Source of the DNA: Parasitella parasitica NRRL 2501
Taxonomy: Eukaryota; Fungi; Mucoromycota
DNA length: 64,000 bases
Reading direction: 5' to 3'
Assembly (NCBI GenBank): GCA_025201805.1
Contig: MU619291.1
Coordinates: 64,451-128,450 of the forward strand
Shown: piece after piece, positions 37,570-64,000 of the stretch
Layout of the letters: the number at the start of each line of letters is the position of its first letter
How positions within the stretch are numbered: the stretch's first letter is position 1
Notes under the pieces: generated by a model
What the model was told of the DNA's origin: nothing
Databases searched by the model: none
Seen by the model: only the letters and a program-made list of their open reading frames with translations
Translations under genes and position numbers: made by a program

Positions 37570-38046
37570 GTAACGGTATATCAAGCTAAATTCCGAAAGA
37601 AGAAACAGATGATTTTGGTTACTTTCTATAAACAATTTATAAGTGGGAATGTCACTTACCCAATAGTATTAAAAGGTCAAAGTCAAAGATGCAGCGCTCG
37701 ATTAATATTAAGTTATATCCACGTTTTATATTTCTTTACTAACCTTCAAAGAGTATTGCCTCCATCGAAAGGCGAGCCCAGTATCTGTTTTCTGTACAAA
37801 AAAGATAGGGCTAAATTGTTGAATTGTATGCGCTTGGCAGTGGTGGGGTTTGGGTCGAAGCAGGGAAAAGTTACTCCAAACAAAAGGCAACCAAGACCAG
37901 CAAGACCAATTGCAAGTGCTGAGACTTGGTCGCGGCACATTGTCTTGAAGGCATTGGGGCATTCTGAATTCAAGCAAAGAAATGAACCGGCTGTTCGCTG
38001 CATTTTGCCATTGAGAGCAGCCACAGGATGAGAAAGCTTGTGGAAG
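37570..38046 (-). mobile_element. Fanzor element 3' stub, family 3 copy 1 (last ~100 codons plus 176-nt 3' end)
   Basis: GSFLCLNSECP..MCRDQVSALAIGLAGL (second zinc-finger pair plus RuvC-III RD); 477 bp with 3 mismatches versus 63506-63982. Confidence 0.85.
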
Positions 38047-38279
38047 GAAATAAAATATTTTTATTTCTAAAAATATTTTTTTTAGTCATGATACTGTGTA
38101 ACATGATTCGAGACTTAGATAACTTGAAAGAGCTATAGATTAATTTGGATGACCCGAAGTATATGAATCTTCATGTATAAATCCGTAGAAGGTTTCTTGA
38201 AAGACATACACTCTACTTGTGTTCTGTAACAGGAGTTAACAAAAACTACTACTAAATAAGTTACGAGTTACGAATTACG

Positions 38280-38370
38280 ATCTTTTTTTTAAAAATTGTT
38301 TTACTGATTGCTCCGTGTATTTAGATCCCCAGGGAATTATCAAGAGGCGGGCGCAATTGCGAATTTATGG
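38280..38370 (+). repeat. Short diverged relative of 4957-5040
   Basis: ttttttttaaa..ttgctcc..tcaagaggcgggcgcaat versus ttttttttaaa..ttgctcc..tcaagcggcgggcgcaat. Confidence 0.5.
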
Positions 38371-40842
38371 TCTATTGAAGTCAGTAAAGAGTTTATACAT
38401 AAAAATGGCTGGTCATGTATTGAGTTACAACCACAAATAAAGGCAAGCGCTTATCAAGTAGTATGTAAAAGAGAGCATAATCATTCATCATATATCTTGA
38501 TGAACTGACATTAGCATTTGCATTTGCATCAAGTAGTAATTTAAAAATGGATATCTTGCAAAAGAATGAGTCATAAAGGAGAGCCCCCATTAAATTAACA
38601 AGGAAAACAGAGAATGATTATTATGTTGATTAACATGTATAAGTTTCATCTATGCAGGACTTAATGTTTAGTCAGTAAGAAAGATTGGACATAGTACCTC
38701 ATGAAACTACAACTACCTTGAATATTTTTACCATAGCAGAGTAAACGTTAATAACCAACACATTTGGTGTCTAATGAGCTAATGATTATGTTTAGAAAAG
38801 CATAGTAAAGAACAAGATACTATCCTTTTAAAGTTCTCAGAGTCTTCGAATAGACGCATATTTGTTGTACCTCGATGGCCATGAATTTTATAGAAGGTGA
38901 AGACTCTCTGATTTGCAATGCTTTGTAAAAAGCAGCTCTGATATATTTATCGTAGCCTATCTAACAAAGAAAGAGACAAAAATAATAAAAATTTCGATGT
39001 GAACATTGCATATTGATGACTAGATTTGGCATCTCAATTTGTAAATAATAAATAAACAGTTATTTGATAAACTTGCCCTCTTGTCTGTTTTGACTCAATT
39101 GAAATTTGTTGTGGTTGATCGTATATATACACTTCTGGTATAACTTTGATGTAATATTTTTTTTATATTGAAAAGGTACCATAAAGGTTATTGTGCCAGC
39201 AAATATTGATTTCATATACAAGGTCTCATTCTGGTGTTTTTATTTGAGGCAAAGCAAGGGTAATCTAGATATACACTCACAAGATTTTGAAATAGTAAAA
39301 TCTTCTTGTATAATGCAACTTATGTGGAAACTTACTCAAAGGATGTATACGTTAATAAAATTGTAATTCTTTGGCAGTTTTATTTAACATCAACATTTTA
39401 AATAATAAATTTATACACGCATAATTTCGGCCATCCTTTTGATTCATGTGTCTCATTTGACGCTTTTCTGTCTAAAATTGTATGCATGTTGGATGTAGGA
39501 CATTTGACGTATGTACTCCGGAAATCACAAAATCTAGTAAGTTCTGTGCCCAAATTTACATAATACCATTCACCAGCTATTTGAATCAGAAGACTGTGTC
39601 GTTTAGCAACATACATGGGTGGTTTTCAATCAATTTATCTTGCAAACGATTTTTAAACATGATTATGTGTGAACGCTTGATTTGCTAACTTGAAACAGCT
39701 CGTTTTCTGAAGCTATATACTTTCATGCACGTTCGAGTTTAATCTGCAATAGAGCCAATACTACATACCACTTGCCTACATCAAATTTATGCTTCTGTTT
39801 CCGTAAAAACTATGAATCTTAAAATCGAGCAAATTTGTTTTCAAATTCTACTTCAACTACCACTAAAAAGATTGAACAAAGCTTCCGAGATACGAAACAT
39901 TAACACTCGTGCAGAACACTTGAAAATACACGAATAACAAGAATTCCTAATGCTTCACATATATAATTAGTAGCTCGAAATATGTGTAGAATGCAACGCG
40001 TAGTAATCGCTTCAAATGGGCAATGTTATTATTTTCATATTAACACATGCAATCAGGACTAAATTCTAGATGCCGATCTTCATTTTAACCCCATCTTTGT
40101 TCATTGATGAGCAGCTTTTAGTACTACACTCGTGAGAGTTAGGTTATTTTTGGAAAAAGAGGCATTTATTCTATACAGCTAGAGAAAACTATATGCTGCA
40201 TCATGTATAAATAACAAAAAGTTGAACACTTGTCGCAGTATATAAATAATCTAATCTTATCTACATGTTTGTGTTTTTAGACAATTTCGGCATCTATCCA
40301 TGGGGATAATGGATTCAAGGGGAAGAGTTTGGTTCCTGTTCCATGGACCATTACATAAATCGAGCGGGAAACCGGAGGTAAATCAGGAATTTTGTTACCC
40401 CACATTTTTAATTTGGATGAGGCTATTGGGCTACTGGGATATTTGTAATATTCTTAGTCAGTTCAACTGCATGGAGAAATGGGTAAACGCTCAATTTTTG
40501 ATTGTGGGTAAAAAAAAAAAAAAAAATTATTCGTTTTGTTACATTTACATTTGGATGTTTCCAATATAGTTGTCTAGCCCCTTTCCATTTGGCTGAAAAC
40601 TAGTTTTCGATAATTTCATATACTACTTGATTTCTATAATAATTATATGGAATAAATCTTTATTAAAGAAACCTAAATAGAAGCATGTCATGAATGACTT
40701 CCCAACATTTATTTTTTCGAAAATGAATTGAAATAAGGTTCAAGGGCAGAGCTACCATATCCCATATAGGATTTATTTTTCTCACGATCTAACCAATAAA
40801 AGTTGCGCCATTTGCGTTTTAGCCATCATAATAGGTAAAGAC

Positions 40843-40851
40843 CTGAGTCAT
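40843..40851 (+). promoter_or_regulatory. Candidate Gcn4/CpcA-type bZIP site upstream of GDH
   Basis: CTGAGTCAT about 165 bp upstream of the ATG, with CCAAT at ~40793 and TATATATA at ~40953. Confidence 0.4.
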
Positions 40852-41014
40852 AGAATATGGAACATGACAACAAAATAGAACGCTTGCAGGGGCTCGCTTC
40901 TTTAAGCTGTGCCCGTACATTATGCTACTAAACAAACTAAAAATAAAAATCGTATATATATAGCTGGGTAGTTTTCGTCTTTTTCTATTATTAAATTTTA
41001 AAATTCAACAAAAA

Positions 41015-44000
41015 ATGAAGGATAATACTACTATTCTAGATAATGAAAGCGGTTATACCGCTAATGTCTATGCTGAAAAGGACAAGCAAATGCTCGAAGT
41101 TAGAGATAACTTGGAGAAACTTGGTTTTCTCCCCAAGGAATTGGTCGAGAATGAGGTGACATGGTTTTACAAGTAAGGGTTACCATGACAACACCATGTT
41201 GATTTTGAATCCAGGTTACTAACATTGACTTTTATCCATAGTAACCTCAATATTGACGACTATTACTTTACTTTGGAAAGTGTTGATACTATCTCTAATC
41301 ATATCATGTCCTTGTACGGTGCCAAAATCTTGGCTTATACCAAGAATGAAAACGTCTTGGACATCAATTTGCAAAAAGAAACCGAAGATTCTGCTGTTTA
41401 TATCCATTCTTCTGAACCTGGTGTGTCTCAAATCTATGGTCCTCAACATGAAAGAGCTATTGATGACAAATTTTTGGACAAGTCTACTCCCTCTGAAGCC
41501 TACCGCGTTGAATCTTATCGTTCAAGCTCCAATGGAGACGGTGTAACTTCACAACTTCGTAGTTACTTTGTTACCAAGTGTGAATTTGGAAATGACTCTC
41601 CTACTCCTGAACAAGAAACTGACATCAAGCAAGTCGCTGATAAGAACTTCTTATTTAAGGCTACTGATTTTACTCTGAAACTCTATGAAGATGTCATGCA
41701 AAATGTGCTCCAACGTACCGGTCCTGTCATTGAAATGTGCGAAGTCAAAGGTTCTCGTGAGCGCCGTCTTATTATTGGTTATCGCCAAAGAAGCACCAAA
41801 GGTTTTTTTTCTGCTGTTAGTGATTTATACCATTACTATGATTTGTATACTACTCGTAAATATGTTGGTAAGTCATTGTGTTTAGACTGAGAAAATAAGA
41901 GTAGTGAACTTATTTCCATTCGAAAATAGAGCAATTCTCCAATGGTGTCACCATCATTGGTTTATACTTGCATCCCGTTCCTCAATCAAAGGCTGCTCCC
42001 ATCGAAAACTCTATTTACCAAGTTATGAAGGAAGCTTCTCTTTTATACTGTCTCCCAAAAACTCCTTTGCAAGAAGATTTCAAAGCCAGTAAACTCTCTG
42101 TTCAAGAAATGGTGTACGGCTACGTTGGTTGGATCTTTGCACAGCACTTTTTGAATCGTTTGGGTAAAGAGTATTTGAGTTTAACCTCTATTTTGGATCG
42201 TGCCAATCCTGTGCATGAAGAAGTTTTGAGCAAGTTGAAGAAGCGACTTCGTCAGGATACTTTCACTCGTGAATATATCCTTGATATCATGAAGAGATAC
42301 CCCGAACTGCTCAAAGTTTTGTACGCAAATTTTGCCACCACACATTACGTCAATCAACGCGAAGCTTCTTTGCAACCTACCATATCCTTCCAACGTTTAA
42401 CCAATATGGAAATACTGTCTGTTGATGATATTAGCAAGCGTATCAAGGCCGTTACTAGCAATGCGCATGAGCAATTGGTCTTTGAATCCTTCTTAACTTT
42501 CAACAAGCATGTCCTCAAGACCAATTTCTATCAAACTACGAAGGTAGCTCTTTCTTTCCGTATGGATCCTAGCTTCTTGCCCGAAATCGAGTACCCTACT
42601 ACTCCCTATGGTTTGTTCCTGGTTGTCGGTTCTGAATTCCGTGGCTTCCACATTCGTTTCAGTGATGTTGCTCGTGGTGGTATCCGTATGATTCGTTCTC
42701 GTAACAGAGAAGCTTATTCTATAAATTTGCGTACCCTGTTTGATGAAAATTATAACTTGGCCAACACGCAACATCGTAAGAATAAGGATATCCCTGAAGG
42801 TGGCTCGAAGGGTACTATTTTATTGGATGTGGATCAACAAGATAAGCCTTTGGTTGCATTCGAAAAGTATGTCGATGCCATGCTTGATTTATTGATCGCT
42901 GGTGAAACTATTGGCATCAAAGACAAGTTGGTCGATCTTACTAAAAAGCCGGAAATTCTCTTCTTTGGTCCTGATGAAGGTACTGCTGAATATATGGATT
43001 GGGCTTCTCAACATGCCCGTAGACGTGGCGCCAGTTTCTGGAAGGCTTTCACCACTGGTAAGAGCCAATGTCTTGGTGGTATTCCTCACGATTTATATGG
43101 TATGACCACTCGCTCTGTTCATCAATATGCTCTGGGCATTTATCGTAAGTTGAACTTGAAGGAAGAAGAGATCACCAAGGTTCAAACTGGTGGTCCTGAT
43201 GGTGATTTGGGTTCAAATGAAATCAAGATTTCCAAGGATAATACTATTGCTGTTGTCGATGGCTCTGGTGTTCTCTATGATCCCGTTGGTATAAATCGCG
43301 CTGAATTGAACCGTTTGGCTCAGAAGCGTGTCATGATCAACAACTTTGACACCACCAAGCTTTCTCCTCAAGGTTTCCGTGTGCTTGTTGATGAAGAAAA
43401 CGTCAACCTGCCTGATGGTTCTGTTGTCGAAAACGGCCTCAGCTTCCGTAATACTTTCCATACCAACAGCTTTGCTCGTTCTCTTATTCTCGTTCCTTGC
43501 GGTGGGCGCCCAGAGTCCATTGGTTTAGATAATGTTAACAAGGTGATTGAAAATGGCCTGTACAAATACATCGTTGAAGGTGCCAACTTGTTCATCACTC
43601 AAGAAGCCCGTCTTCGTCTTGAAAACGCGGGTGTCATCCTCTTCAAGGATGCTTCTGCGAATAAGGGTGGTGTTACCTCGTCTTCTTTGGAAGTTTTGGC
43701 TGCTCTCGCTTTCGATGATGCCGGTTTTGAAGAACACATGTGCATCAAGAATGGTGTTACCCCTGCTTTCTACGAGGCCTATGTCAAGGAAGTTCAAACC
43801 ATCATTGAGCGTAATGCTAATCTTGAGTTTGAAGGTCTTTGGGAAGCAAACCAGAAGACTCGCACCCCTATCTCTATTCTGTCTGATGAGTTATCAATTG
43901 CTATTGTCAAGTTATCTGAGCAGCTTCAAACTACTGGTCTCTGGGATAACGAGAGCTTGAGAAACACTGTGCTGAAACAAGCATTCCCTCAAAGTTTGTT

Positions 44001-44154
44001 GGAGAAGTTGGGTATGGAAACCTTAATGAAGAGAGTGCCTGAAAGTTATGTCAAGGCTATCTTTGGCGCTACTCTTGCTTCTCAATTCGTTTATAAGTAC
44101 GGTGCTCATCCTGATAACTTTGCCTTCTTTGAATTCATGCGTCAAAACTACTAG
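41015..44154 (+). CDS. GDH2: NAD-specific glutamate dehydrogenase, 3 exons
   Basis: FRGFHIRFSDVARGGIR, NKDIPEGGSKG, FFGPDEGTA, TGGPDGDLGSNE, EGANLF, KDASANKGGVTSSSLE. Confidence 0.97.
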
Positions 44155-44235
44155 ATATCTCTTTGCTTTCATCTACTATTTCACTTGTATTATAATATTC
44201 AATCGATCAATCAAATAAATTTATTCAAATAAATT

Positions 44236-46075
44236 TTATAGTTTATCCATAGATACTTGTACTTGATTCTTGATATCTTTCCAAGAAGCGGCGTTCTATC
44301 AATATGTTGGCCATGCATTTTCCTCCAAAAAAATAAATAAATTAATAAAACTTACCTGCTCACAATATACAAGATGTATTTTGGCAAATGCAATCAACAT
44401 TTGCCTTAGCTCAGTCTCCTTTTGTAGTTGCAGTCTGTCAAGGTCCTGCTGTATCTGAACAGACATGTCTTTTAGGTCCTGCCTGGAATTAATTCTCGCT
44501 TGATCCAACTAATAGATAATAATGGATTAACTGCTATTATGTCGAAACGTATACAGAACATACCAAATCAATAGCCTCCCTCAACTTGCTAATTTGATTC
44601 CGTCTTGTTTGCCCTGGGTCTGCGTCCATCATACCCTGGATTGTATCACTTACAGCCGAGAACAATTTCCTTGGAGAAGACCATCTTTTGGTCTGGTTTT
44701 TCGAAGCGCGCAGCACAGATGCGCTTGCATTAATTGGGTAATTGATAGTTGAATTATTTTGCTCAGAATCATCCACCTTAATAATAGCTGAAAATCCATC
44801 CTCAATAGATTCGGTATCTATATTATCATCTTGCTGATCAAACTGATTAGTGCTATGGTCAATGTTGGGTGCTTTTATTGGGTGTTGTACAGTGTTCTCT
44901 TGCTTCAGATCCAATTTTGATGATTCGTCTTCAGTTTTAGCGAGGTTGCGCAGCTGGATTTTCTTGTGGTCAATGGCTTCCTCTATCAACTCTAGTTGCG
45001 CTTCCTTCATACGTCTATAGCGTAGCACTTGTTTAGCTATATATACATACTGAGTATATTCCTGCACATGTTCCGCAAACTCCATTTCAAGTGATTGAAC
45101 CATTGTCCTCGTTGAATGGCTAGTCCCATCAACCGTTTGTCCCATCCTTTCGAGGGAGGTTGCGAGCGTCCCTGTCTCGTTTAGACTGAGCGCATTATAA
45201 GCTGATCCCAACTCGGCATAGTCATCTGACAAGTCTATTTTACTAATTGTTTTAGCATATACGCCCATATTACGTAGTTTTTTAGTCTTGTAAAACTTAC
45301 CCCCAAGACGTCCAAGTATGCGTTTTTGTGATTTCTCAAACTGAAAGGTATATTGCTGAGCTTTCTTATCTACTTTCTGCTCAGACTCTTCGAAATCTTT
45401 ATCAGGGTACTTGAGTGTGTATGATGAGGAGGGTATTGGTATAATGCTGGTAGATGTAGGCAGATTACTGGTAATGGACGTTTTGAAGCTACTGCTTTCA
45501 CTGGCTGACAGTAATGGATCTTTTGGCAAGTCGGATAAGGGACTTGACTGGCGAATTTCAGTCCAAGTTGTGTCTCCATCGAGGAAACGATGAAAGATAT
45601 GCTCTTTCATCAAGATTGGATGCTTCGCCAATCTTTGGAGAAACCTTTGGAGCATTCGTTTTCTCTTTTCTATAGTAGCATAGTCATCCTTTGTATTGGC
45701 GTAATTTACTGCGCAAAAGCAGTTACAGGTGAATGTCAAATCGTTGAACCCAAAACTCACAACCTACCAAGCGAATGTTTTTCTGGTATAGGTGGTATAA
45801 GCAATGCTGGATATAGCTTAACAAGAGATCTTCGAAATGATTCAAATTCGCTATATCTTCTCTTTGCTCGTTTGTTCTATACAGGTATTCTCAATAAGTA
45901 TATGCATCCTCAACTCGAATTTTTCCCAGGCAAATAGTATTGTTACCTCTGCTATTTCAATGGTGTAAACAACAAATGTATTTTTGTTTCCTTCTATTTG
46001 CTTGTTTTCAGCTTCTATTATCTTGATTTTATTGGCTAAATTTATTAAACATTGGCAAGGTGTAGGTGTATACAT
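44236..46075 (-). CDS. PX-BAR sorting nexin (Snx41/Atg20/Snx4 group), multi-exon
   Basis: [49 protein letters not shown], helical BAR C-terminus. Confidence 0.9.
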
Positions 46076-47946
46076 ATTAAATGTGGAAAAGGGAAAGGGA
46101 AAGAAAAAAGAAAAGGAAAAAAGAAAGGATAGGGTCACTCATACAAACAAGCTTTGTAGTATTTATGCAGTAGTACGGTACTTGGGCTGCTGCCAATAAG
46201 AAGCTTGCTTTTAGTTTGTTTGATCCGGGAATAATTACCATCAAGTGTTTGACCAGAATCAATAATCAACCATTACGCATCTAGAATTCTTAATGACCAA
46301 GGTTCACGAAAGACTCAAATTTTATTACAATTGTACTGTAATATTTGAAACTATTTTATATCTCTTGGAGCGTATCATATGTACAAAAGATTTTTCAATT
46401 GTAGGCAAGCTAGCTTCTCCCCACCTTTTTCGTATTATGATCTGTATCATTACGTAGAACATTGTGCAAAAGCATCAGTGCGTGGATGTATATAGCAACA
46501 CCCAATGATGCGCTAATTAAATATAACGATTGAAGCAAGGTTCCATAGCCCAAATATATAGCAAAGCAGAAATTGAAAAGGTATCCCATATCAGTGTACA
46601 TGACAGCTACAGCCTACAGGCGACTTTTCGCTATGATCTGATTGTGTCTAAACAACAACTTTGTTTATTTGGGCCAGTTCATAAATTTACTCGGCAGAAT
46701 TGCAGGTGGCTTCATTCATTCTATTGCACATAAGGAATTTCAAAAGTGAGCTTGGCTACTTTATATAATTTTCAATCGTACTTGTCCAGCATATCCGGAT
46801 CTGTAATATAAAAAGTATTTCACAATTAGTAACAGTATATGTATCATATAGCTCATACAATTAAATATGATGTATAGTCCCACACTGCTAAACATACGGT
46901 ATAGATTGCCAAGTTAAATGCCATGCTCTTATGTTATTTATCAAAATCGATCATATACTTTTATTCTCCATGACGAATAAAATGATAATTTTTATCGACT
47001 TGTATGTGTCTATTCATCACAACAACACAGATGATCTTGCTAAAATGAAATTTATCAAAACAAGATTAGAGAATTGTAAAACTGATAGCTAAATATGCAG
47101 CGTAACTTAACATGAAAAGCCATTTTTACGTAGTTTCATGTTTGGTTAGAATGGATGCCACTTGATCATGACCATTAGCTTTTCCCCCGCTTGCAGGCTT
47201 AATTTGCAATCTCTAATGTCTTTTCACCATTCTACAACATATTCGAGTCTCAAGTACCTCTGACCATTTTTCAGATTTTGCTGTGTTTGGACCCCAAACC
47301 TCATATTCGATTTTCAATTTGAGGTTCAAACTGAGAATACAGGCTAATACCATAATATAACTGTACCTCAATACGTCTTCCGATTCTACACGCCTTTGCT
47401 TCAAAATACTTGAAGAAATAGCCTATACAGTAATAAAAAGGTATGTATCAGATGAGGTTGAATCCAGTATGCCTGATCTTGGATAGTTGGCGGTGTTTTT
47501 AGCAGAAGTCATAGATTGATGAGCTTGAGCAGCTTCACGAAGTGGTGCAAGGTTAGCTCGCGAACTGTGAAATAAGCAAACAGTATTACTATAATTTTAA
47601 ACAGCAAACATGCTAGTTAAATCAGCTCCAAATAAAAAAGCCAACGTTTTCATGTGAAAAAAGTTTTAAGGTGAATGTGGAGAATTGAGCTATTGCAGAA
47701 AAACATTACCCACTTCTTATTTATTCTGAAAAGCATATAACTTGTTAATATGCATAACTTTTCTATCACATGTTCTCGGGTTGATAACGCCAAATTTTCA
47801 TTGCTCTCACCCTATGCTGTAACATTTTAGTTCCATATACAAACATTCTCAGGTTTAGTATAGATTAAACCGAGTGTTTATGACAAAAATCAACACGAAA
47901 ACACTTATTTATTTATGCAACATTATCGTGTAATTATAGCAACACT

Positions 47947-49359
47947 TTAATCAAGAGTGACTCTTGCAGGTAATAAGATAACCTGTTCTTCATCTACAAA
48001 TAATGGACTAATGACCATTTTAACGTGTTTGCCTTCAGTTGTAGTATTCGGACCAACCAGAGCCATGACCCGTTCATCATAGCTACACCCGACAGCAATG
48101 GACTGAATAGTAACATCGGCATCTCCTCCGTGAATTTCAAGAGACAAAGCTGCAGACATTTCCAAGATATCTTCCCAAATATGCATGTGATCTAGTGATC
48201 GGCCAGAAGCTTTAGACATTGTACTCAATAATCTGCTCATCTCTTCAGTTAATCCATTTCGCATGTCTGCCAGGTATTCTTTTGTGGCAGGGTTGAGTGA
48301 TAACGACTGCACAGTCTGTCTTCTATACCACTTTGCAAAGTAGGCACCTAATGTACTGTGAAACCGACGAATTTGGTCTGAATAAGCTGTGTTCAGTAAG
48401 CGCTGATTCTCTGTACCAAATGGAAGTGAATTTAAATAGGACTGTATGATTTGAAGAAACAGAGCCTGCTCAAGTTGTAATCGATATTCTTCATCGACAG
48501 TAGATTGCACAAATCTGGTTAGCGTTTCTGCCAGTTTAGCCAATTTCTGGGTCAAGGTGCGGGCATTGACAATTGGTTGCACTGGATTTGATAAAGGAGA
48601 TGCAGCAGCAAAGTAATTGGGATCCTTTTTCGATTTTTGATTTGCTGGATCTTTGATTTGAGACAGATTCATCGCTTTGCCAAATAACTCGTCATCGCAA
48701 CCAGTCAAGTTTCTTAAATTGCTGATCATTTCTTCTTGATGCTTCTGTGCAAGCTGTGCATTACGCAACTGAGATTGCAATATTTCATTTTCTTCCATCA
48801 GTTCAGCGTAAGATTTATTCACAGTTGCAAAGCTAGGCTGTGGTTGCGGTGGAGCCATGATCTGATCATCCACTATACGATCCTCATCATCACTCGCAAC
48901 GCTATTTTCAAAATCTCCTCTGGCAGAACGAGCTCCATCATCGCCAAACTCTGCAGCATTGGACCGCGAACGCTTGTCGTCATCTTCCTCGTTTCCTTGT
49001 AACAAATGTGTCTTTTCGACCAAGTCACGCTCTGAAAGACGAATATCGTGCAAATGGTCTCGAATAGAAGCTTCCCCATCCAAGGTAGAGCGATCGTCAT
49101 CTGTTTCTCTGTCCATTGTCATACGACTGCTGCTAATAACAGAAGGTGGCCCTCCGCCAAGAGCACTAATCACAGATTCTTGGTCATCAATAGTTGCTGC
49201 TACACTCCAGGTATCTGTATCACGGAGACGACTGGTATCCAAAGTATCCAACAAGTCAGTTTTGCGAAGATACGAATGTCTTGCACTAGGTCCTTCTATA
49301 AAGCTCCTTTGAAAAAAAGAGTCTTTATCACTACCTTCATACGAAGAAACCGAACTCAT
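47947..49359 (-). CDS. Hypothetical protein (acidic disordered N-terminus, coiled coil, helical C-domain)
   Basis: Uninterrupted ~470-codon ORF with ATG in an AAAATG context. Confidence 0.8.
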   Translation of the reverse strand: MSSVSSYEGSDKDSFFQRSFIEGPSARHSYLRKTDLLDTLDTSRLRDTDTWSVAATIDDQESVISALGGGPPSVISSSRMTMDRETDDDRSTLDGEASIRDHLHDIRLSERDLVEKTHLLQGNEEDDDKRSRSNAAEFGDDGARSARGDFENSVASDDEDRIVDDQIMAPPQPQPSFATVNKSYAELMEENEILQSQLRNAQLAQKHQEEMISNLRNLTGCDDELFGKAMNLSQIKDPANQKSKKDPNYFAAASPLSNPVQPIVNARTLTQKLAKLAETLTRFVQSTVDEEYRLQLEQALFLQIIQSYLNSLPFGTENQRLLNTAYSDQIRRFHSTLGAYFAKWYRRQTVQSLSLNPATKEYLADMRNGLTEEMSRLLSTMSKASGRSLDHMHIWEDILEMSAALSLEIHGGDADVTIQSIAVGCSYDERVMALVGPNTTTEGKHVKMVISPLFVDEEQVILLPARVTLD

Positions 49360-49888
49360 TTTTTTTAATCTTTGCAATAGAATAAAGAAGAAAGGGAAAA
49401 AAACGGAGCCAAAAAAAAGAGCTTTCTTAAATAGGGGATCTCGATGTGTGCGTAGCGAAATGTAGCTAGTGACCTAGGAAGGCGTCTTTGTATTCCTTCC
49501 CATCTACGAATACAAGGAACATAGCGTAGTCAATTCAAGGTCAATAGCTCTAAAATGTTGTATGCCCATTCAGATACAAGAGTATTGTCTGGAGAAGTGT
49601 ATTGGTGTGAATATGAATCCGGTGTTTAAACCACTGATTTCCATGGCAAAATGTTTGAGAATCAGTGCAGCGCAAGACTATTTCTGGATGGATACGAGCT
49701 CAAGCTTCTAAAAGTCCATTTCAATCTATGCCAATTACAAATATTAGACTATTTCGTTATTTAACATCCATCAACAAAAGGCAATTTTAAAAGAAAGTAC
49801 AATGAATATCACATTTGAGCCATCTCGAGTTTTCGACTCCGTTTCCTGCATTACACTACGGTTAAAGAAGAATTTTATTAATTAAATT

Positions 49889-50172
49889 AAGAACACAGCA
49901 AAATAAACACAATCCAGCGAGGAATAGAGTGTATAAATGCTTTGTTTGGTTTTGTAATTCCCATTCAAGTTTCGAATTTTTGAGAAGTCGGCGTTAAACC
50001 AAGTATATCTCATTTTGAAAAACTAATTAAAAATATATAGAAGCTTTAGAAAGCTATAAAAAAATATGTGCGTATGCAACAAAGCGTGAAATAAATGGTC
50101 ATGTATTTTGATTTGAATTAAGAGCTCTTTCAACAGAGTAAATCATGTTGAAAGTCGGGTGAAATAGCTTGA
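49889..50172 (+). repeat. Dispersed ~285-bp repeat, copy 2
   Basis: Near-identical to 5092-5376. Confidence 0.9.
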
Positions 50173-50242
50173 ATCAACCAAATTAGGATATTCAAAATCC
50201 AAAAAAGGCGATTTTTTAAGCTGTACACTCCGTTCTAATTAA

Positions 50243-51570: not shown

Positions 51571-51924
51571 ACATATGTTAAAGGAGATTGCAGGATATGT
51601 AGTTTATGATGTAAGTTAGTATTCAATAAAAAAAGCTGTTTTACTGTACAGGTTAGAATGTAATCTTTAGTAGCTGTCTGAATCCAAGTGAATGAATGAG
51701 CTCAATACTTATAAAGAAGTCTGGAATCTTGTCATCAATTTCATTGATTCGAAGCTGCATACTTTATCACATTGTTCTTAATAGTTTAATTGAACAATCT
51801 TGCGTTAAACTAAATATTTTGTTTGTGGAGCCATATATCGCAAAAAATAAATAAAAAAGAAAGCTTTAATAAAAATGAAGGTATACTATTATATATTATG
51901 AAAAAAAAAGGACTACACGATGTC

Positions 51925-53539: not shown

Positions 53540-53779
53540 ATTGATTTGTGTGTATGTGCAAGCTGGAGCAGGTCCAAGTGTATTATTTCAAAATGGCAGT
53601 AGTAATAAAAAAAAAAAAAAAGGGTAGAGAGGAAGAACAAACAAAAAATGAGATTTTCTCAGAGAAGGAGGAAACGGAATGCGGCTATTTAAACCAGCGT
53701 AAACTGGCTCAAAGCCCAAATCCTTTCTACACCAACCCCAACAGTGCAGAGACCAGCCCTCTGTCGATCCTACATCTAA

Positions 53780-55550
53780 TCAAGCCTGAAAGCCTGACGC
53801 TGGCAGATGATTTTTATTACTAAATACCAAGCAATGTACCAAAATCATTGCCAAAAGACAGTCTGGGTCCTGTAATGCCAAAGCTCCATTCGCAGGGCCA
53901 TTGCTATTATTACCACAGCTGTTCCTATCGGTGTCTACTACCTCCGTTACATTTACATTACTTGACAATTGTGGCAATGGAGGTGGTGAAAGGGAGGCCA
54001 CGCTGGCTTTTCTAACCATGTAATCTTCCTCATCGCTACCATGTGCATACACCTTTGTCAAACGCCTATTTGCTTTCGCTGCAGCTGTGTTGGCTGGGAT
54101 TGGCGGTAATTGAGCATTTGCATATCTGTTGTGAGTCGGTGGAGGCGGATAGTCAAAGCTATTTAGGCTGCTGCCATAAACACTGCTGTACATCAAGTAC
54201 TGCACTTCAGGATCTATATTAGAGCATCTCCTTCTCCTACTGTTCGAGGACACCATGGGCTGGCCCAATCGAAAAGAGTCGTTTGTCAATGATGGAATTG
54301 AAGATAGTGTAATCTGTCTTTGAGGAGCATTCGTTGTGCGAGGAGAGTGCAATCCAGAAGAGGCTATTGTGTCCATAGCAGGAGACATGGTGGTGTTTCG
54401 TGGAAACAGCTCTTCTACGGCTTAGACGTCTTAAGCATATGGTCTTAGTGCAATGGTGGCAGGCAAACCAGGAGCTGGGCTAGAAGCAGGAGATGGCGGC
54501 CTTGAATGAAGCGTCGTTGGTTGGCTTTTGTTTGCCGAAAGGGTAGCAGAGGAACTAAGACTAGGCGCATTATGACTACTGCGTATGGATATCTCTGAAA
54601 AAATTGATCGCTGGTCGTCAATGCTGACATTATCCACAGGCCCAGCGGTAGCTGTGTCTTTAAATGGCCGACCTTGCCTTGTAGCATTTCTTGATTGCTG
54701 ATAGTCTAGATTGGAAAGCACATCTGCATTGGCTGCTTGTAGTGTTGAAGGTAGCGGTAATGTAGTAGTCTGTGGCGGTGGCGGTGATTGTCGCAAAGAA
54801 GGCTTTGCTTTGAATTGATTTACTTTTTCCCGTTTGCTAGATCGACATCAATGGGCTGCAATTGTTTTCTTTGCACGTGCGATCTCTTTATTGTGGGTAT
54901 TGCCGTTCGCGAGCGCTCTCCAAGCTGTCTTTGATTGTCCAAATGCAATGATTCTTTAGATGTAATGCCTAGATCAAATGCAGACGCAAATTTCTTTATT
55001 TGTCTTTGATTGCTGCTTTGGAGATGTGTTGCAGTCGATGGGAGTGTAGGTGTCAACGCCCTCCGGTCGAAAAAATTACAAGAGTTTACCATGTAAGCAG
55101 TACTTGCGAGCGGCAGTGATGGACTTCCACCAGGAAACATCAACGCAGCGGCTCTTATATCTGTTTGGTGATCTCTTTCTTCGGCATTGTCGTCGCCTAC
55201 AATTGGATGTGTATCCCGGCAAATGCTAACGTTGCCGCCATTGTGCGTGCTACAGTCATCATCGTCGTTGGCATGGTTACTATATTCCGGCTTACAAGGC
55301 AAGATTCGTGATCCGGCTGTTTCTTCAAGCGCATATTTCGTCATCAAGTTCTGTTCTGGCTGCTTTTCATGCGGTACGGATGCAATAATGATGGGCACCT
55401 TGGTCTTGATTTCCTCATGTTTCATCCCAAATTGGAAGGTAATCTCAAGCTGGTGGTAGACGGAGAAAAGAGGAGAGTCCAATGTGTAGCTGAGACGAGG
55501 GTGCAGCTCATGTCGTATCCAACAAGGTTTTTTCCAAGTCGAACAAGATA
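53780..55550 (-). pseudogene. Arrestin-like gene, 3' half (pseudogenised)
   Basis: TWKKPCWIRHELHPRLSYTLDSPLFSVYHQLEITFQFG..KVPIII; one-base frameshift in an A-run at ~54825; two in-frame TAA at 54431-33 and 54422-24. Confidence 0.8.
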
Positions 55551-55554
55551 TACA

Positions 55555-56045
55555 CTACTGATCGTTTTTAAACCATCGCTGCGCTGTGCGTGGGTTGATT
55601 TGAAGTTTTAGTGCTGCAGCTCTGGCACTCATACCCCTTTCATAAATCAAGGCAAACAACTGCTCCTTTTCTGAATTTTTGTGATGTTTGCGAATGTCGC
55701 GAGCTCTTGTATCTTCCTCCAGCTTGACATCTCTGTCGGCTGATTGTCGTTTGAGGTCAAGATACATACAGAAATTCGTCGCCATCTCAATGGGGTACAT
55801 CTCCTCATCTACCTCCATTTCCACTACTGTAACTGCCATGCCTTCGTCGTTATAAAAATTTTCTTGGCTGTCATCATGCACAAAATTATTCATTTTTGAA
55901 GAGAAATTTGTAAATGTAGCGGTCTGTGTGGTTAGTGTGGTTTGTGTGGTGTGAGTGCCACACTGCATTTTCACGTTTGAGGCGCCGAAACCATTACTTG
56001 AATGTCACCAAACAAAAAATGCAGTGTGGTTTTGACGCTCGCCTA
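55555..56045 (-). mobile_element. Tc1/IS630-like transposase 5' fragment with upstream repeats
   Basis: MNNFVHDDSQENFYNDEG..LFALIYERGMSARAAALKLQINPRTAQRW (HTH), truncated at the arrestin junction. Confidence 0.7.
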
Positions 56046-56371
56046 GTGTTCCCCAAAGTTAAAAATCGCTTTTCAAACAAAAAAAAAAGAGCTCTCTTTA
56101 TCTTAAAAATAACGACAATGACGAGAGATAAATTTAGTACCTATTTAAACTCTACTTCGTACATATACACTCAAACAGTAGCTTTGAATATGCATTTTAT
56201 GTCCGTAACTTTTGTAAAGGAATGACGCGTGATCAAGCCCGAGTTTGAAAGGATCCCCTTATTTTCTGTCGTCGGATAAATGTTTAAAGAGAGTGTGGCT
56301 TCGAGTGGTTTTCAAGTGTCATTCACACTCAAAGATTTTTTATTGAATAATGTAAGATAATAACTCTAATC

Positions 56372-57955
56372 ATGTCTGAAACTCCACCTATCGTATATAG
56401 TATAGCTAATATCAAAAATGCGTTGAGCATAATGGCATCGAATCAATCAAGGAAACTAACATTGGATCTAGTAATTTATGTTAAGGCCTCAGTATGGGAA
56501 GCATGTCTATTAAAGATAAACGAATACTGCGGTACCAAATGGACAAAACTAAGAAAATGGAAGAGTAGTGACAAAGTCGTATTCGGAGAAACAATACAAT
56601 ACCATAGAAGTGGAGCATACGAATCCAAGCGATCTGCACATATCGGTCAAAAGGATAGTAAGCGCTGTAGGTGTGCAGCGCTATTGAGTATTGCTAGCTA
56701 TCATGCAAATGTGCCAAGTCATTTAGGATCAGATGTTGTAGAGTTCAAACTTTTGAAAATCACACAAATCACACTCCTGGTGATTTAAATGAACTGGGCA
56801 CGTTGCCAATTAACAGCACGGCTTTTGACACTATCAAGTACCCTTTGGCTTTAGGAAACAAATGCAGAAGTATAAGAATTGCAACCCTAAAAACTTTGGG
56901 TACATTGAAAGAAGAAAACAAAGGATCTCGACGTCCTAGTTATGATGATGTTTACAATTTAATGAAGAAGGTATTGATATACAATTCGTGCTATCGAACA
57001 ATAATGAAAAAATCAAACTTTATAATTAAATGAAATATTACTTGTACAGATATCGAGAGAATGATATTAAATCGTTTTTATTTTGGTTGAATGATAAATT
57101 AGCTTCTCAGGGATATAAAAGTTTTGCTGGCAACCCACAATTGTCTTCACAAGACACAAGCTTGTTTGCTTATGGTTTTCAATCTCAAATTCAATCAAGA
57201 AAAATGGAACAGCATCAATCATTTTGTATAGACGCTACCCATGGCATTTCTTCTAGAAGCATGGAGGTTTTATATACCCTTCTAGTTAAATATTTATTGA
57301 CTGGAAAGGGCTATCCTTTTGCATATATGGTCACTAATGATCAAAGTGTAGGTCCTATAAATCAATGGCTTGTTTATCTGCGAGATAATTGTAATTTAGC
57401 ACCTACAGCAATTACGATTGACTGTAGCTTAGCTGAATTCAATGCCATTAAAGCAGCTTTTAGAAATCAAGTTGTTATCCATTATTGTGCCTTCTATATC
57501 TGGCGATCATGAAAAGATAACTTGGGTGCAAAACTGTCTTTACCTACGAGCATGTCAAACACTGAAGCAACAGAGTACAAACCGGATCTTTTGAACGACT
57601 CGCACTTAATTCTTGCTGAAACGAGGAAAAATTCATTATTTAGAAGAATAGAAAGATTCAAGCTAAAGATCGAAGAACATACTGAAGTCTTAGATTATTT
57701 TACTCGATACTGATTTAACAATGAAGAAGTAGTCAAGAGATGGTCGTCAAAGAAATCCACAAGTCATTTGTAACCAACAACTACATCGAAAGTTGGCATA
57801 ATCAACTAAAAGTCGTTTACTTTGAGGGACTAAGAATTAACAGATTGGACAGATTGGTCTTTGTCCTAACAAACGATGTTGAATATTACTTCACAGAAGA
57901 GTCTAATAGAATACTAGCAAATATTGGACGCATGGGCCCATTACAACTTTTTTAG
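56372..57955 (+). mobile_element. Mutator-like (MULE) transposase pseudogene
   Basis: FCIDATHG, GKGYPFAYM, ITIDCSLAE, HYCAFY (decayed CxFH), TNNYIESWHNQLK (DDE triad); several stops and frameshifts. Confidence 0.9.
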
Positions 57956-57979
57956 AATGTAGTCGAAGGAGACAGCTTG

Positions 57980-59330
57980 ATCTTTTTCGATGGCAGATCG
58001 ATTGCTTCTATATTAAAATCACATGGAAAAAACTGCTCGTTGATTATCAAAATTTACCTGATGAAGAGAAAGCCCTTTGTGGTTTTTGCCTTAACGGTAT
58101 TCTTGACCTCAGCAACAACAACGAATCTGGACAGAAACAATTATTTACCAATGATCAGTGGAAGTATTTGAACAAACACCTTAGGTCAAAAGTGGCAAAA
58201 AGAACACCTAAACTAAGCGATACTACCAAGGAAAGACTTGAAGAAATAATTGGAAAAATCAAAGATGAAGATGAAGAAGAATCATATTACATGGCTTTAG
58301 AAAGTACTAGAGATGCTCACCCGAACGATAAGTGGATGTTCAAAGTCGTTTCTCATGTGTAAGCATTGCATATTTTAGACTTTCAATTAGAGATGGTAAA
58401 TCCTCTATACAGTGTATTAATGTATAATTTTAGAATCAATTCATACAGGGAGCGCTCATATATATTCAATAACTCAACATCTGATGTGAGTGAACTAGAT
58501 TTATGATTAAATTATGGGGTGAGGTCCTGGAGCTCTTGATTGGTGATGACAAGAACCTTTTTATGAAATGGGGAGAGACCTCCACTGACACCACCACAGC
58601 AGTTCGACGCAGCAACAACAACAACTGACCCCACACAATTGGATGCAAGGTCGATGGGAGGATTGTCTGTCAAGTCTCAAAAAACATTGATACATATCAC
58701 ATTGAATCGGCTAGAGCATCAGCTAGCTATAGAAAAGTTATTGATGACAAATTCAAACTTGCTGCTGAGGCAAAATGCACGGTTGATGATATTGTGATCT
58801 CTGGAAATCTCTTCAAAGAACCTTCCGTCTGTTTACAAAGTTTACAAATCTTTGGTTTGCAAGCCAACGTATGTACCTTACACCTTCTCGATCGCGGATT
58901 CTACGTGAATTGCGTTGATCATGACATTTCACTTCATAACAGTCTTAAACGTTTCTCTGACGATTTTATCACTTGGATACGTCACCTAGCTTCATTAAAA
59001 AAAATTGTAAAAGTATTGCCTCATTGTCAAGCCAAGCTTATCATAACCAGCCAGCCACGCTTCCAGAGATGTTTAATTTACAAGATTTTGATGAAAGCCT
59101 TGATAAGTACTGCAACAAAGATTGGGTGACAGGCTCCTTTCTACCACCAACCAGCACAGGGATCTTTTCCCCCCAAACAGTTTCTTACCGTTACATCAAC
59201 AGTAAACAGATCATATAAGAAAGATTATCCAAAAAGTTATCTTGATGATGGAACTGAAGTTGTTTCAATATATAACAAAATGTCTCAAAAGAAATAAAAG
59301 CACCCATCTGCCTCATCTGCCTCCTCATCC
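57980..59330 (+). pseudogene. Broken PD-(D/E)xK-like nuclease-fold gene
   Basis: WGET..IGCKVDGRIV..IESAR..KVIDDKFKLAAEAKCTVDDI..LQIFGLQA..LHLLDRGFYV; frameshifts. Confidence 0.55.
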
Positions 59331-59544
59331 TATAAAAAGATACACAAGAACTAATAAATATGAGTATCTGTAGCATTGAACAAAAACTACAAATAAAAAA
59401 AGCTTTTGATGTATGGCCACGATTCTTCTCTTGTCTTATATCTTAATTGATTTTATTATTATTCCTTTCTTTTCTCCTTGGATTATTCATATAAAAAAGT
59501 AAGATCGTGCTATAGATGTTCTATTAAGTATGTGTTGCTTATCG

Positions 59545-59887
59545 TATATAACATCCAAGCGCTGACCATCACCTCATCAATAACGGTTATCCGGTTTCTC
59601 TATTTGAAAAGCTTTGCGAGAGCAGATTGTCTGTTCACACCGTTCTTTCGTGCTTGTCTTGAGCCTTCGTCTCTCAACCTCTACAACCAAGATGATATTC
59701 CTCAAATACAAGCCATGTTGAGTTTTGCTTCTTTCCGCAAACATCTCGCCATCCAACCGCATGATGTTAATTTTGCTTACAATCACGGACGAACTCGAAA
59801 CTTCCGCAAAATGGTCATTGAAGCGACAACTCGTCGTCTACCTACTACTCCGGTTACATCATGTATCTTCTGGAAACAGTTTTGGGT
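59545..59887 (+). mobile_element. Probable L1-like LINE ORF2 fragment (region just upstream of zf-RVT)
   Basis: LFTPFFRAC..RTRNFRKM..P..FWKQFW, the pattern preceding the C-terminal zinc finger of fungal L1-like ORF2; cut at the arrestin junction. Confidence 0.5.
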
Positions 59888-60365
59888 ATAACGTGGTTTC
59901 AACCAACGGAGACAACTCCTTGCAAGGCAGTAAGTGTCTTTTTAGAATGATGAGGTATTCAGCTGTCATTGTTCTTGTAATGCCAGTAGTGATGGTGACA
60001 ACGACTATGTAGTTGATAGTAGCTCGCTTATTTGAAAAGCTTCTGGGGTAAATATTTGGTACATCCAGCTCCCAAGGGATAATATGGTCTCCCGCTGGTA
60101 GATTTGTTTTACCAAGCAATGGCACTTTTAATTTGGGCAGTAATGAGCATACTGTTTCCACGTTGTATGGCGACTTTAATCTGATACCAATAAAGCCTTT
60201 AAATTTGATGGATATTTGTCTGATTTTTGTAGGTCTGATCAATGTAAATCCAACATGTCCTTGTAATGCTCTGGATTCCTCTGCGGATTGAAGTTTTGCT
60301 GGGCCAATGACTTCAATATAATTTTGTTTTGGGTTAATCTCTATCGACCTGAAATCATCCTTCAT
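59870..60365 (-). pseudogene. Arrestin-like gene, 5' half (arrestin-N fold)
   Basis: LQGHVGFTLIRPTKIRQISIKFKG..LPAGDHIIPWELDVPNIYPRSF..ATINYIVVVTI..IILKRHLLP; ORF ends at foreign sequence. Confidence 0.8.
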
Positions 60366-60566
60366 GATGTTATTTTGCTATTTCAGCAGGCGCAAAGTAG
60401 TAAGGGAAAGCAAGAAAGAAAAGGATTTGGAACTAACGAAGAAAATGCTTGTTTTTCAGGTTAAATACAGCAGTGTTACTCAAAAAGTGGAGTATTAATG
60501 GTTGCACTCTACTTGTAAAACATTATTAATTCTTTTTTTTTTTTTCTTTTATACACAAAAAGTATA

Positions 60567-62402
60567 ATGAAGCTTGCGCTAGGGTGCTTATTTGCACTGA
60601 TGGTCGCAGAAGCTTATTTCGCTCCGTTTACAAAGGTCGAAGAGAGCTTCAATCTACAAGCAACGCACGATATCATACACCAAGCAGATCAGTTTGACCA
60701 TGTACTATTCCCTGGCGTTGTGCCGCGTACTTTTGTAGGTGCATCCTTATTAAGCTTATTCGCATGGCCGTTGATTAAATTCGCTCAATTATCCTCGATC
60801 AACCAACAAGTCTTGGTCCGTGTTATTCTGTCTGCCTTTGTTGTCCTCTCCCTGGGGAGATTCGCTTCTGGTGTCAAATCTCTGCTGGGCCCAACAGCTG
60901 CAAATGTAACTATTATGCTCATCATTTGTCAATTCCACTTCGTGTTTTGGTCTTCTCGCACGTTGCCAAATACATTGGCGTTGCCATGGGTTCAGCAGGG
61001 TCTATCTCATTGGCTGTACAGCCTATCACAATCCAGTGGTCGTACACAACATTTGAACTGGATGATTCGGCTCCTAACATTTGCTGGTGTTGTGTTTCGG
61101 TTTGAAGTAGGCATCTTGCTAGTTGTCTTGCTGATAAGCGAATACATGCATGGGACAATCACAGTATTAAATACTCTAAAGCAAATGTCTGTTACTTTTG
61201 TTGTTAGTTTGCTGATTACGGTACCTCTAGATTCGTATCTTTGGAACGCATGGCTCTGGCCAGAAGGCATGGTCTTTCATTTCAATGCAGTTCTCAATAA
61301 GAGCTCTGAATGGGGAACTCTGCCTTTTTATGCGTATTTCGCCCTATTTCTGCCTCGCTTACTCCTCATTTCATACCCATTGGCATGCTTTTCTTTTGCA
61401 ACAAATGGGCGAGTTCGTCGCATGTTGACACCCATGATTGTTTATATCGCACTATTCTCCTTCTTGCCACACAAAGAATGGAGGTTTATTATCTACGCAA
61501 TCCCTGTATTCACTGCTGCTGCTTCTGCTAGTATTGCAAAGTCTATTCATGCCGCATCTCGTTCCTGGTTACATCGCATTTCACTTTTCGTTATGTTGGC
61601 GGGTGCTGCTGCGTCATTTGCAATTGCCACCACCATGTTTCAAGCATCTCGATTTAACTACCCTGGAGGAGAAGCTTTGCTCGCTTTGCATCAGATTGAA
61701 AAGAATAAGCCCTACGTGCATGTTCATATGGACGCTGAAACTGCCATGACAGGGGCATCTCTCTTCGGTCAATCTAACCCCAACTGGTCTTACTCCAAGA
61801 ACGAAGCACACACGTCTCAAGACGACTTTTTGGACGCCCATTATACACACGTTATCACAGCTCGTCCTGAAATGTTTGACATGACATTGTTCGAAATCAT
61901 TGACAAGACGTATGGATTGGATAAAGTGCAGCTGAAAACATTACATGAATACAAGAAATCTATTCAGAAGCACAACATCTCACCTATTGAATTCATAATG
62001 TCTCCTAAATTATATACACTTCGGTTGATCAACCCTCAAAAGGTTTGGATTCAAATCATGTTGCGCAAATTCCCAGTTGTACTCTACAGCAAAAGCTATT
62101 GGTAAAGTTCATTTTATGTGTATTGTAACGGTAACACAAAGTTCTGATTTCTGCCTTGTTGTTCATATTGCAGTCCATATTGTATGGCGGCCAAGCAGCT
62201 CATCTCGAAATACTGTAAGCATATAGAAGTCATTGAAGTGGATCGTCAAAGAGATGGAAACGAAATACAGGATGCTTTGATTGAATTGACTGGTCAACGT
62301 ACATTTCCAAATCTATTCAAAAGTGGTAAGAGCTTAGGTGGGTATGACCGGCTATCAGCGCTAGACAGAGAAGGAAAATTAGCTGGACTTTGTGATTCCT
62401 AA
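60567..62402 (+). CDS. ALG12: ALG12 alpha-1,6-mannosyltransferase fused to a C-terminal glutaredoxin (intron 62102-62173)
   Basis: PFTKVEESFNLQATHD, FPGVVPRTFVG, SRTLPN, LPHKEWRFI, NYPGGEAL, AMTGASLF, YSKNE; then PVVLYSKSYC/PYC, TGQRTFPNLF, LGGYD. Confidence 0.92.
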
Positions 62403-63505
62403 AATGTATAAACTTGGTTCTCTGTGAGACCATGATAACAAAACAAATGCTGTCCTCTAGTTGCGTTGAAGGAAACTTGTATTTGTTTGATTACAATAGT
62501 CAATAATACGTATTTTATTATAAATGTATCATGTATTGATAGTATTCGTATAAACACTCTACTGCATTGGTACAGCAGTATATATACATTTCATAGTTTC
62601 AAATTAAATGCATCAATAAATCATTCATGAATATCATTAGTGCAATTCATATACCAAAGTTATCGTAAAACTTTTTTAGCAAGATATCTATCTATTCAGA
62701 CATTCATTCATCCTTCAACTCTTCAATGCACAAAGTATCTCTTACGCTGTACTGATTGGTACAAGTAGCCGTATTGTGTGTGCATTTTTAGATTACACAT
62801 ATTTATACACTAATTGATCATATGCAATGCTATACGTTGTCAATGTTAAAGATGTAATAAAATAACCTTTTTCTCTCGTTAACTTGACTTTATATTATTT
62901 TACAAACATTCTTCCCTAATGCAGATTTATTCATACTACAGAAAACTAGTCCTTTTATGCTCGTTTTATAATATATTATGGAATAGTATCCCTTTGTTTT
63001 TACAGTCGTCCACTATAAACATACTACATATTTACCAGAATATTTCCGTATTAACAAAAGCTCGTATATATCACTGCGATAAAGAGCAAATCAAGAACTG
63101 TTTTATGCGCCATAAGATCGGGCAAGATCATCGCTATCTGAGCATAACTTGCTTTCACTCGGCAATGTCTCTATCAAAAGATACATGCAAAAACAGTTTT
63201 ATTTTTCAATATTTATCATGTATTTAATAGATGAAGTATATGTAATGGAAAAAAAATATATAAATGACAGATAAATTCACACAAATTTTCATCTATCTGT
63301 AGTACTAGAAATGAAATCTAATCGACAACTTCATTACCTGAAAATAATATACCGTTTTCTTCCATCTGCATGTTGGGAATACCCTAAACATTTAATTGTC
63401 TATGTTTAGAATAAAAGTGCAGAAATAGTTTTGTTCAAAGACACAGAGTGAGAGACACGAATTGATTTTAAAGAATCACTGAAGAACAACGCAATTCCTA
63501 ATACT

Positions 63506-64000
63506 GTAACGGTATATCAAGCTAAATTCCGAAAGAAGAAACAGATGATTTTGGTTACTTTCTATAAACAATTTATAAGTGGGAATGTCACTTACCCAAT
63601 AGTATTAAAAGGTCAAAGTCAAAGATGCAGCGCTCGATTGATATTGAGTTATCTCCACGTTTTATATTTCTTTACTAACCTTCAAAGAGTATTGCCTCCA
63701 TCGAAAGGCGAGCCCAGTATCTGTTTTCTGTACAAAAAAGATAGGGCTAAATTGTTGAATTGTATGCGCTTGGCAGTGGTGGGGTTTGGGTCGAAGCAGG
63801 GAAAAGTTACTCCAAACAAAAGGCAACCAAGACCAGCAAGACCAATTGCAAGTGCTGAGACTTGGTCGCGGCACATTGTCTTGAAGGCATTGGGGCATTC
63901 TGAATTCAAGCAAAGAAATGAACCGGCTGTTCGCTGCATTTTGCCATTGAGAGCAGCCACAGGATGAGAAAGCTTGTGGAAGCAGAAAACACACGTTTGC
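63506..64000 (-). mobile_element. Fanzor element 3' end, family 3 copy 2 (continues beyond the window)
   Basis: QTCVFCFHKLSHP..GSFLCLNSECP..CRDQVSALAI: both zinc-finger Cys pairs plus RuvC-III; the ORF is open to the window edge. Confidence 0.88.

Follow-up and report, generated by a model that had tools for sequence, protein, structure and literature searches.

The 64,000-nucleotide (nt) stretch analyzed here (the window; Parasitella parasitica NRRL 2501, contig MU619291.1, positions 64,451 to 128,450 of the forward strand) carries two minus-strand 3′ ends of a Fanzor-encoding element that we call family A. Family A is a young, multicopy DNA-transposon family of a Mucorales-type fungus, and the noncoding tail of its Fanzor gene contains an intron that is spliced in vivo. 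Taken as a whole, it is probably a non-autonomous Fanzor transposon family in which the tail has a spliced intron and the right end gives rise to an omega RNA. Fanzors are eukaryotic RNA-guided nucleases in development as compact genome editors, and the family bears on how a guide RNA is produced in a nucleus where transcripts are capped, spliced, and polyadenylated.

The family and its spliced tail

Segments 37570-38046 and 63506-63982 are 477 nt long each and have 3 mismatches in a MAFFT alignment and by direct comparison (37704/63640, A/G; 37710/63646, A/G; 37717/63653, A/C), all within 14 nt of the noncoding tail, 29 to 42 nt 3′ of the stop codon, in what is the most variable part of the family A tail. 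On the minus strand, the pairwise identity of the two copies ends after ..GCTTGATATACCGTTAC; copy 1 then continues with TATATAGATTT.. and copy 2 with AGTATTAGGAATT... Its upstream limit, 38046/63982, lies directly past the first Cys pair (C-V-F-C), and both copies retain the second Cys pair (C-LNSE-C) and RuvC-III (C-R-D-QVSALAIGL). A previous sequence-only reading of the window had reported this near-identity with differing flanks and had placed both pairwise borders where we find them. Across the genome (32.8 Mb, 450 contigs), the 477-nt stretch was found at at least 43 sites on many contigs, with 79 to 100% identity and different flanks each time; family A is represented by at least 43 tails and 42 5′ ends, in line with the recent activity assumed earlier. 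High identity alone would speak for an assembly artefact or a segmental duplication. However, the flanks differ on both sides, the internal structures of the two copies differ, and more than 40 other copies lie on other contigs, so that the twin is neither a chance match nor an assembly artefact, and we assign a negligible probability to this explanation.

Splicing was observed in contigs of the only public run that contains this DNA, X1 (labeled “RNA?”), placed on L034:1300-6100 (4,801 letters), which covers an older, full-length copy. The GT..AG joint at L034 1560>1638 marks a leader intron, the joint at 4732>4809 connects ..NRFQIL to EDTKDAD.. in frame, and the joint at 5754>5829, present in 2 contigs, removes a 74-nt intron within the tail. 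The tail is 181 nt long, this intron and the 21-nt terminal segment behind it included. The splice signals of the intron, kept in most of 23 aligned copies, are a donor GTAAGT, a branch-like AGTAAC, a pyrimidine tract, and the acceptor TTTAG. A genome search returned no intronless DNA copy of the spliced tail, and the spliced contigs are therefore best read as RNA; one 2-mismatch pattern match (on contig C179), considered as a possible genomic origin, was unrelated. Another contig has a loose end at L034 5671 that continues as the exact reverse complement of window 37533-37562. Because it joins a GTTAGT donor to an AG in the flank of copy 1 itself, copy 1 must be transcribed, and in this contig, the only one specific to copy 1, the whole tail is spliced away. 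The shared 176-nt tail, proposed earlier as the omega-RNA candidate, is thus interrupted by a 74-nt spliceosomal intron.

By sequence comparison, the position of the tail intron is conserved in related families. Family B, a paralogous Fanzor family of ~45% protein identity (L044 2802-7200; C29:215500-223500, minus strand), has in its 11 copies a tail layout like that of family A, with a predicted intron of 74 nt and a terminal segment of 20 nt; the tails of both families end in CAGTAT. A relative in Mucor circinelloides has a 64-nt intron with a perfect ACTAAC branch site and a 25-nt terminal segment ending in ..CCGTTGCAGTAC, while the tail intron of a Mucor hiemalis relative measures 71 nt. 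A hairpin with a CGAUG loop is also conserved. It is coding in family A and M. circinelloides and noncoding in family B, where the open reading frame (ORF) ends ahead of it, and its fourth pair varies among the three lineages as U-A, A-U, and C-G. The final 11 codons of family A extend across the hairpin, which explains part of the C-terminal extension after RuvC-III; this extension, noted earlier from the letters of the window, is real and typical of family A. RNAalifold detected no covariation within family A among 23 tail copies, minimum free energy folds of unspliced and spliced tails from three families showed no convincing common architecture, and an Rfam search of the tail found nothing. 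Horizontal transfer from Mucor was also considered, but the supposed cluster of ≥90% identity is a 71%-identical M. circinelloides family and provides no evidence for it.

The gene, its predicted product, and the copies in the window

The family A element, ~4.4 to 4.6 kb long, is occupied by one intron-containing gene of ~1,300 codons and has no room for a transposase. The gene layout was read from the older copies L034, L036, L037, L039, L045, and L046, and the exons were searched one by one. Single ORF pieces gave nothing significant for a nuclease in Pfam, NCBIfam, and PDB. The Pfam model PF07282 (Cas12f1-like TNB) remained below its gathering score (best E values of 0.0007 to 0.024, 15 to 20 bits versus a cutoff of 26.3) because the family is too divergent for a single-domain model, and this result is outweighed by profile and fold evidence. 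An exhaustive profile search collected 554 relatives, the named ones being from Mucor, Lichtheimia, and Halteromyces. Among the sequence searches, only a profile built from the C-terminal halves of 14 family members reached SpuFz1, the Spizellomyces Fanzor (8gkh; E, 6.8e-8), with weaker matches to PpFz1 and Cas12f. In Foldseek, an AlphaFold2 model of a homologue (P0019:380-713; pLDDT, 76) has SpuFz as its top match (E, 2e-7; TM, 0.56), followed by PpFz, GtFz, Cas12f, and TnpB.

The conserved motifs are GTDNG, MFVGDRGxGxGS, TNEHNTSQTCxFC, CxNxxC, and RDxxSALAIGL. The acidic RuvC triad D/E/D (GTDNG, TNEHNTS, RDQVSAL) is present in L034, L045, and the homologues, while the window itself shows RuvC-III only. 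Both the homologue model and the family profile support a RuvC fold into which a zinc-ribbon (TNB) domain is inserted. Together, the profile match, the Foldseek ranking, and the motifs point to a distant Fanzor1, distinct from the characterized PpFz1, and bear out the earlier assignment of the ORF to the TnpB/Fanzor-type RuvC nucleases. The C-terminal half of the ~1,300-amino-acid (aa) product is predicted to be a distant Fanzor1-type RuvC and zinc-ribbon nuclease, and the family appears to be a deep-branching, giant Fanzor1. The N-terminal region of ~450 aa is also conserved; it showed no Pfam family, no Atlas match, and no recombinase or transposase signature, and its AlphaFold2 model reached a pLDDT of 51, too low for meaningful structural matches. 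A seemingly intact homologue in two parts (gene calls of 487 and 713 aa) is found on L063, a 4.8-kb contig from an ENA metagenome (k141_641928), which carries the hairpin and, directly after the stop codon, a GTAAAC donor.

The gene is carried by a multicopy mobile element whose ends are defined, as expected of a Fanzor1 passenger. Compared by BLAST with L034, copy 1 consists of a 3′ part (reference positions 3892-4384) and a 5′ part (1-58), i.e., 482 nt of the 3′ end fused to a 51-nt 5′ end at 38046/38047, with a 4-nt microhomology, GAAG (Table 1). Since the segment past the break recurs 4.6 kb from the tail of copy 2, copy 1 is an internal deletion. It is a noncoding remnant, as had been supposed, although one that joins both ends of the element and not a simple truncation. 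Copy 2 is of full-length size, 4,613 bp from 63501 to window-equivalent position 68113; its frame is open through base 64000, reading ..QTCVFCFHKLSHPVAALNGK.., and its left end, which the sequence-only reading had sought beyond the window, has the same 51 nt as the 5′ end of copy 1. Further young full-length copies are present on contigs C40, C52, C25, C9, C132, and C28 (two copies). Deletion junction 873|3997 is shared by at least five copies (L014, L015, L022, L025, and L026) and junction 1121|3393 by at least six (L006, L016, L017, L018, L024, and L030); such recurring identical breakpoints indicate that non-autonomous forms were amplified in trans. Every derivative type retains at least the last ~390 nt of family A.

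About 500 bp from copy 1, at window positions 36649-37065 on the plus strand, lie exons of a P2-like 60S acidic ribosomal protein (C terminus, ..EEKEESDD), toward which the read-through transcript of copy 1 heads in the antisense direction. A second Fanzor family within the window (34690-36060) had been set apart in the sequence-only reading as a finding of its own.

Table 1. Coordinates of family A features in the window
Feature	Position	Strand	Evidence
Copy 1, internally deleted non-autonomous family A element, both termini kept, 533 bp	37565-38097	minus	BLAST versus full-length copy L034
Copy 1, 5′ terminal segment, starts ACAGTATCATGAC..	38047-38097	minus	
Copy 1, 3′ remnant of Fanzor ORF: second zinc-ribbon Cys pair, RuvC-III (codons 37923-37937), C-terminal extension	37746-38046	minus	
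Copy 1, conserved hairpin GCCUUUCGAUGGAGGC in last codons	37758-37773	minus	
Copy 1, stop codon TGA	37746-37748	minus	
Copy 1, copy-specific 181-nt intron: GTTAGT donor two bases past stop, AG acceptor in host flank	37563-37743	minus	RNA contig
Copy 1, tail intron, 74 nt	37586-37659	minus	X1 joint on L034 and conserved signals
Copy 1, terminal segment, 21 nt, motif mutated to ACTATAT	37565-37585	minus	
Copy 2, 3′ end of full-length-size element, ORF open to window edge	63501-64000	minus	
Copy 2, conserved hairpin in last codons	63694-63709	minus	
Copy 2, stop codon TGA	63682-63684	minus	
Copy 2, tail intron, 74 nt	63522-63595	minus	X1 joint on L034 and conserved signals
Copy 2, terminal segment, 21 nt, ends in family terminus ACAGTAT (63501-63507)	63501-63521	minus	

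Termini, target sites, and the partner element T

The 23 3′ ends can be aligned as far as ..GCTTGATATACCGTTACAGTAT, past which they diverge. The family terminus, ..CCGTTACAGTAT, is found in 17 of the 23 copies. A boundary common to the copies thus exists, as the sequence-only reading had anticipated, but it lies 5 nt further out than was drawn there, as the terminus of copy 1 is mutated (ACTATAT for ACAGTAT). Eight aligned 5′ ends begin ACAGTATCATAAC, after a purine-pyrimidine pair, and the element therefore starts and finishes with ACAGTAT. No duplication beyond ACAGTAT was seen in these aligned ends (23 3′ and 8 5′). In our reading, the left ACAGTAT aligns, within a 13-nt imperfect inverted repeat, with an ACGGTAT inside the right end. 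L027 is an insertion in a host repeat of which 3 uninterrupted paralogues read ..TTATAAC-ACAGTAG-TAGTCAG.., and hence the target already carried the motif; the 5′ flank of this insertion was sought for the comparison and was not found. These paralogous empty sites with ACAGTAG, together with the ACAGTAT at both ends, do not support the terminal TA or TAA proposed earlier as the target site. Two other interpretations of the termini were discarded: a Helitron is ruled out by the end sequences, and, for an introner, no GT..AG pair at the ends removes the element so as to leave one ACAGTAT.

A search with the 5′ end of family A retrieved a 3.65-kb element, T (L068 396-4046, contig C207), with a second copy of 98 to 99.5% identity (L069, contig C254). 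The first ~80 nt and the last 14 nt of T and family A are common, while the interior differs. T has the 13-nt imperfect repeat and ACAGTAT at both ends; it has neither long terminal inverted repeats nor a variable 8- to 10-bp duplication. Its protein contains DUF6729 (E, 1e-15), a 3′-5′ exonuclease domain (PF01612; E, 1.7e-17) as an insertion, and a conserved C-terminal part, with the motifs KADHSFK, FTDNVDGD, and TNSIEGG. The nearest Atlas clusters are Mutator/MULE/IS256, with feature scores of 0.77 to 0.82, which are below threshold and have the value of a lead, and structural TM scores of 0.34 to 0.64. No Pfam transposase model matches the protein, and a literature search on DUF6729 found nothing in the library searched. 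Motifs and nearest clusters suggest that the T protein is a DDE transposase, and we infer that it is the likeliest mobilizer of family A in trans. Relatives are multicopy in Mucorales and in Agaricomycetes such as Mycena and Pleurotus. Within L068, the first coding exon of T is duplicated in tandem (346 bp; positions 740-1463) beside a gap of 10 N, which may be an effect of assembly.

Family A and T insert at sites already resembling ACAGTAT. Instead of a shared core or crossover site, the flanking repeats could represent a normal target-site duplication of 7 bp, generated by a DDE transposase whose target is very strict; to this we give appreciable weight without favoring it. The putative mobilizer is Mutator-like, Mutator elements produce 8- to 10-bp duplications, and the empty-site paralogues hold one ACAGTAG, all of which would fit a duplication. 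On the other hand, L069, a young copy of T, has unlike end motifs, TCAGTAT on the 5′ side and ACAGTAG on the 3′ side. A crossover within the motif with a TCAGTAG target would yield such hybrid sites, which fit a newly made duplication less well. In our reading, moreover, the left ACAGTAT aligns as part of the 13-nt imperfect inverted repeat with the right end.

Readings of the tail and relation to known systems

In the mechanism that we propose, family A would be non-autonomous and mobilized in trans by the T protein through the common ends. Transcripts reading through the right end into the flank would supply the omega RNA, with a scaffold from the ORF end and the tail and a guide from the flank, and splicing may either remodel this RNA or divert transcripts between mRNA and guide fates. 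An omega-RNA role of the tail is plausible. Fanzor ORFs are known to contain introns, and their guide RNAs to overlap the right end (PMC10530073); our literature search found no paper on a spliceosomal intron in a Fanzor tail. More tentatively, the intron may itself be part of the making or control of the guide RNA, either by joining the ORF-end scaffold to the 21-nt segment and the guide or as a switch between mRNA and guide, with ACAGTAT serving both as integration site and as target-adjacent motif (TAM). The TAM of PpFz1 is ATN (PMC11423790).

Several points weigh against the proposal. The RNA evidence consists of contigs of a single run whose “RNA” label was guessed, and in these contigs read-through and splicing are visible but RNA ends are not. 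The family A gene is readable in older, degenerate copies only, with no intact Fanzor gene among them, and the structure was modeled on a 37%-identical homologue and not on the window's own protein. The tail gives weak minimum free energy and consensus folds, and the hairpin is supported by one compensatory pair in three lineages. The identity of T as a transposase is based on motifs and on the subthreshold Atlas scores. Lastly, a TAM inside ACAGTAT would also stand at the occupied site, which may permit self-cleavage.

The sequence-only reading took the 176-nt tail for an uninterrupted omega-RNA scaffold running to ..GTTAC, with TA/TAA as the target and copy 1 as a working, guide-only element with a second guide. 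Nearly identical tails with different flanks are what this would predict, and in the Fanzor omega-RNA paradigm the scaffold is set at the right end (PMC10530073). We nevertheless regard it as improbable: the family terminus lies 5 nt further out, at ACAGTAT, and is mutated in copy 1; the tail contains a spliced intron; and in the sole copy-1-specific RNA contig the whole tail is spliced into the flank, which counts against copy 1 as a functional guide-only ghost.

The tail could also be a cis-acting transposon end combined with an ordinary 3′ untranslated region, in which the intron is a feature of the mRNA unrelated to any guide RNA (e.g., dosage control through nonsense-mediated decay); the Fanzor may then be inactive or use RNA from elsewhere. 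Introns located more than 50 nt 3′ of a stop codon classically mark an mRNA for decay, all derivative types retain the last ~390 nt, as for a transposase-binding end, and the tail has no convincing RNA fold. Yet the hairpin is conserved at the nucleotide level although coding in one family and noncoding in another, and the intron position and a terminal segment of ~20 to 25 nt are kept across families with 45% protein identity. T, in addition, shares the last 14 nt only, so that transposition alone does not require 390 nt. We therefore consider this explanation rather unlikely, if less so than that of an uninterrupted scaffold.

The family offers a test case that combines a very long, deep-branching Fanzor1, a spliced tail intron found across Mucorales lineages, a 7-nt end and target motif, and a candidate mobilizer of an uncharacterized transposase type (DUF6729 and exonuclease). 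If splicing is tied to guide formation, the prediction and engineering of Fanzor guide RNAs would change, and the tail would be a spliceosome-based, eukaryotic counterpart of the conflict between intron and guide in bacterial IStrons. If the two are unlinked, a well-delimited non-autonomous Fanzor element and its partner would still have been described.

Among known systems, family A resembles Fanzor1 (SpuFz1, PpFz1, and GtFz1; PDB 8gkh, 9cf0, and 9cer) in its predicted RuvC and TNB zinc-ribbon fold, in a catalytic layout that places the glutamate within ..TNE..TS..C..C, and in the right-end location of its intron-containing gene within a eukaryotic DNA transposon, followed by a noncoding tail up to the transposon end. 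It departs from Fanzor1 in its divergence (16% identity to SpuFz1, an E value of 0.023 to 9cf0 [PpFz1], and a subthreshold PF07282 match), in being about twice as long, with the extra conserved N-terminal region of ~450 aa, and in its tail with a spliceosomal intron; it is known here from sequence. Like IS200/IS605 and IS607 elements, it shows a short, invariant motif at its left junction and no target duplication of the usual kind, and its TnpB-type gene points toward the right end; in those elements, the fixed target motif beside the left end doubles as the TAM. In family A, by contrast, the same motif also closes the element, and no HUH or serine recombinase was found. T is comparable to Mutator/IS256-like elements, since it encodes a putative D..D..E-type protein and its non-autonomous partners share the termini only, but it differs from them in lacking long terminal inverted repeats and a variable 8- to 10-bp duplication and in having a fixed 7-nt end motif and an inserted 3′-5′ exonuclease domain. 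An association of Fanzor1 with MuDR was reportedly noted by Bao and Jurka in 2013. The IStrons are bacterial IS605/IS607 elements with TnpB, an omega RNA, and an overlapping group I intron that competes with the omega RNA (10.1101/2023.11.20.567912). The intron of family A is instead spliceosomal (GTAAGT..AG), with no match in Rfam; it measures 74 nt and lies within the tail, and its splicing does not remove the whole element. Like the IStron intron, however, it lies at the right end, in the region expected to give rise to the guide RNA, and by analogy splicing and guide formation could compete in family A as well.

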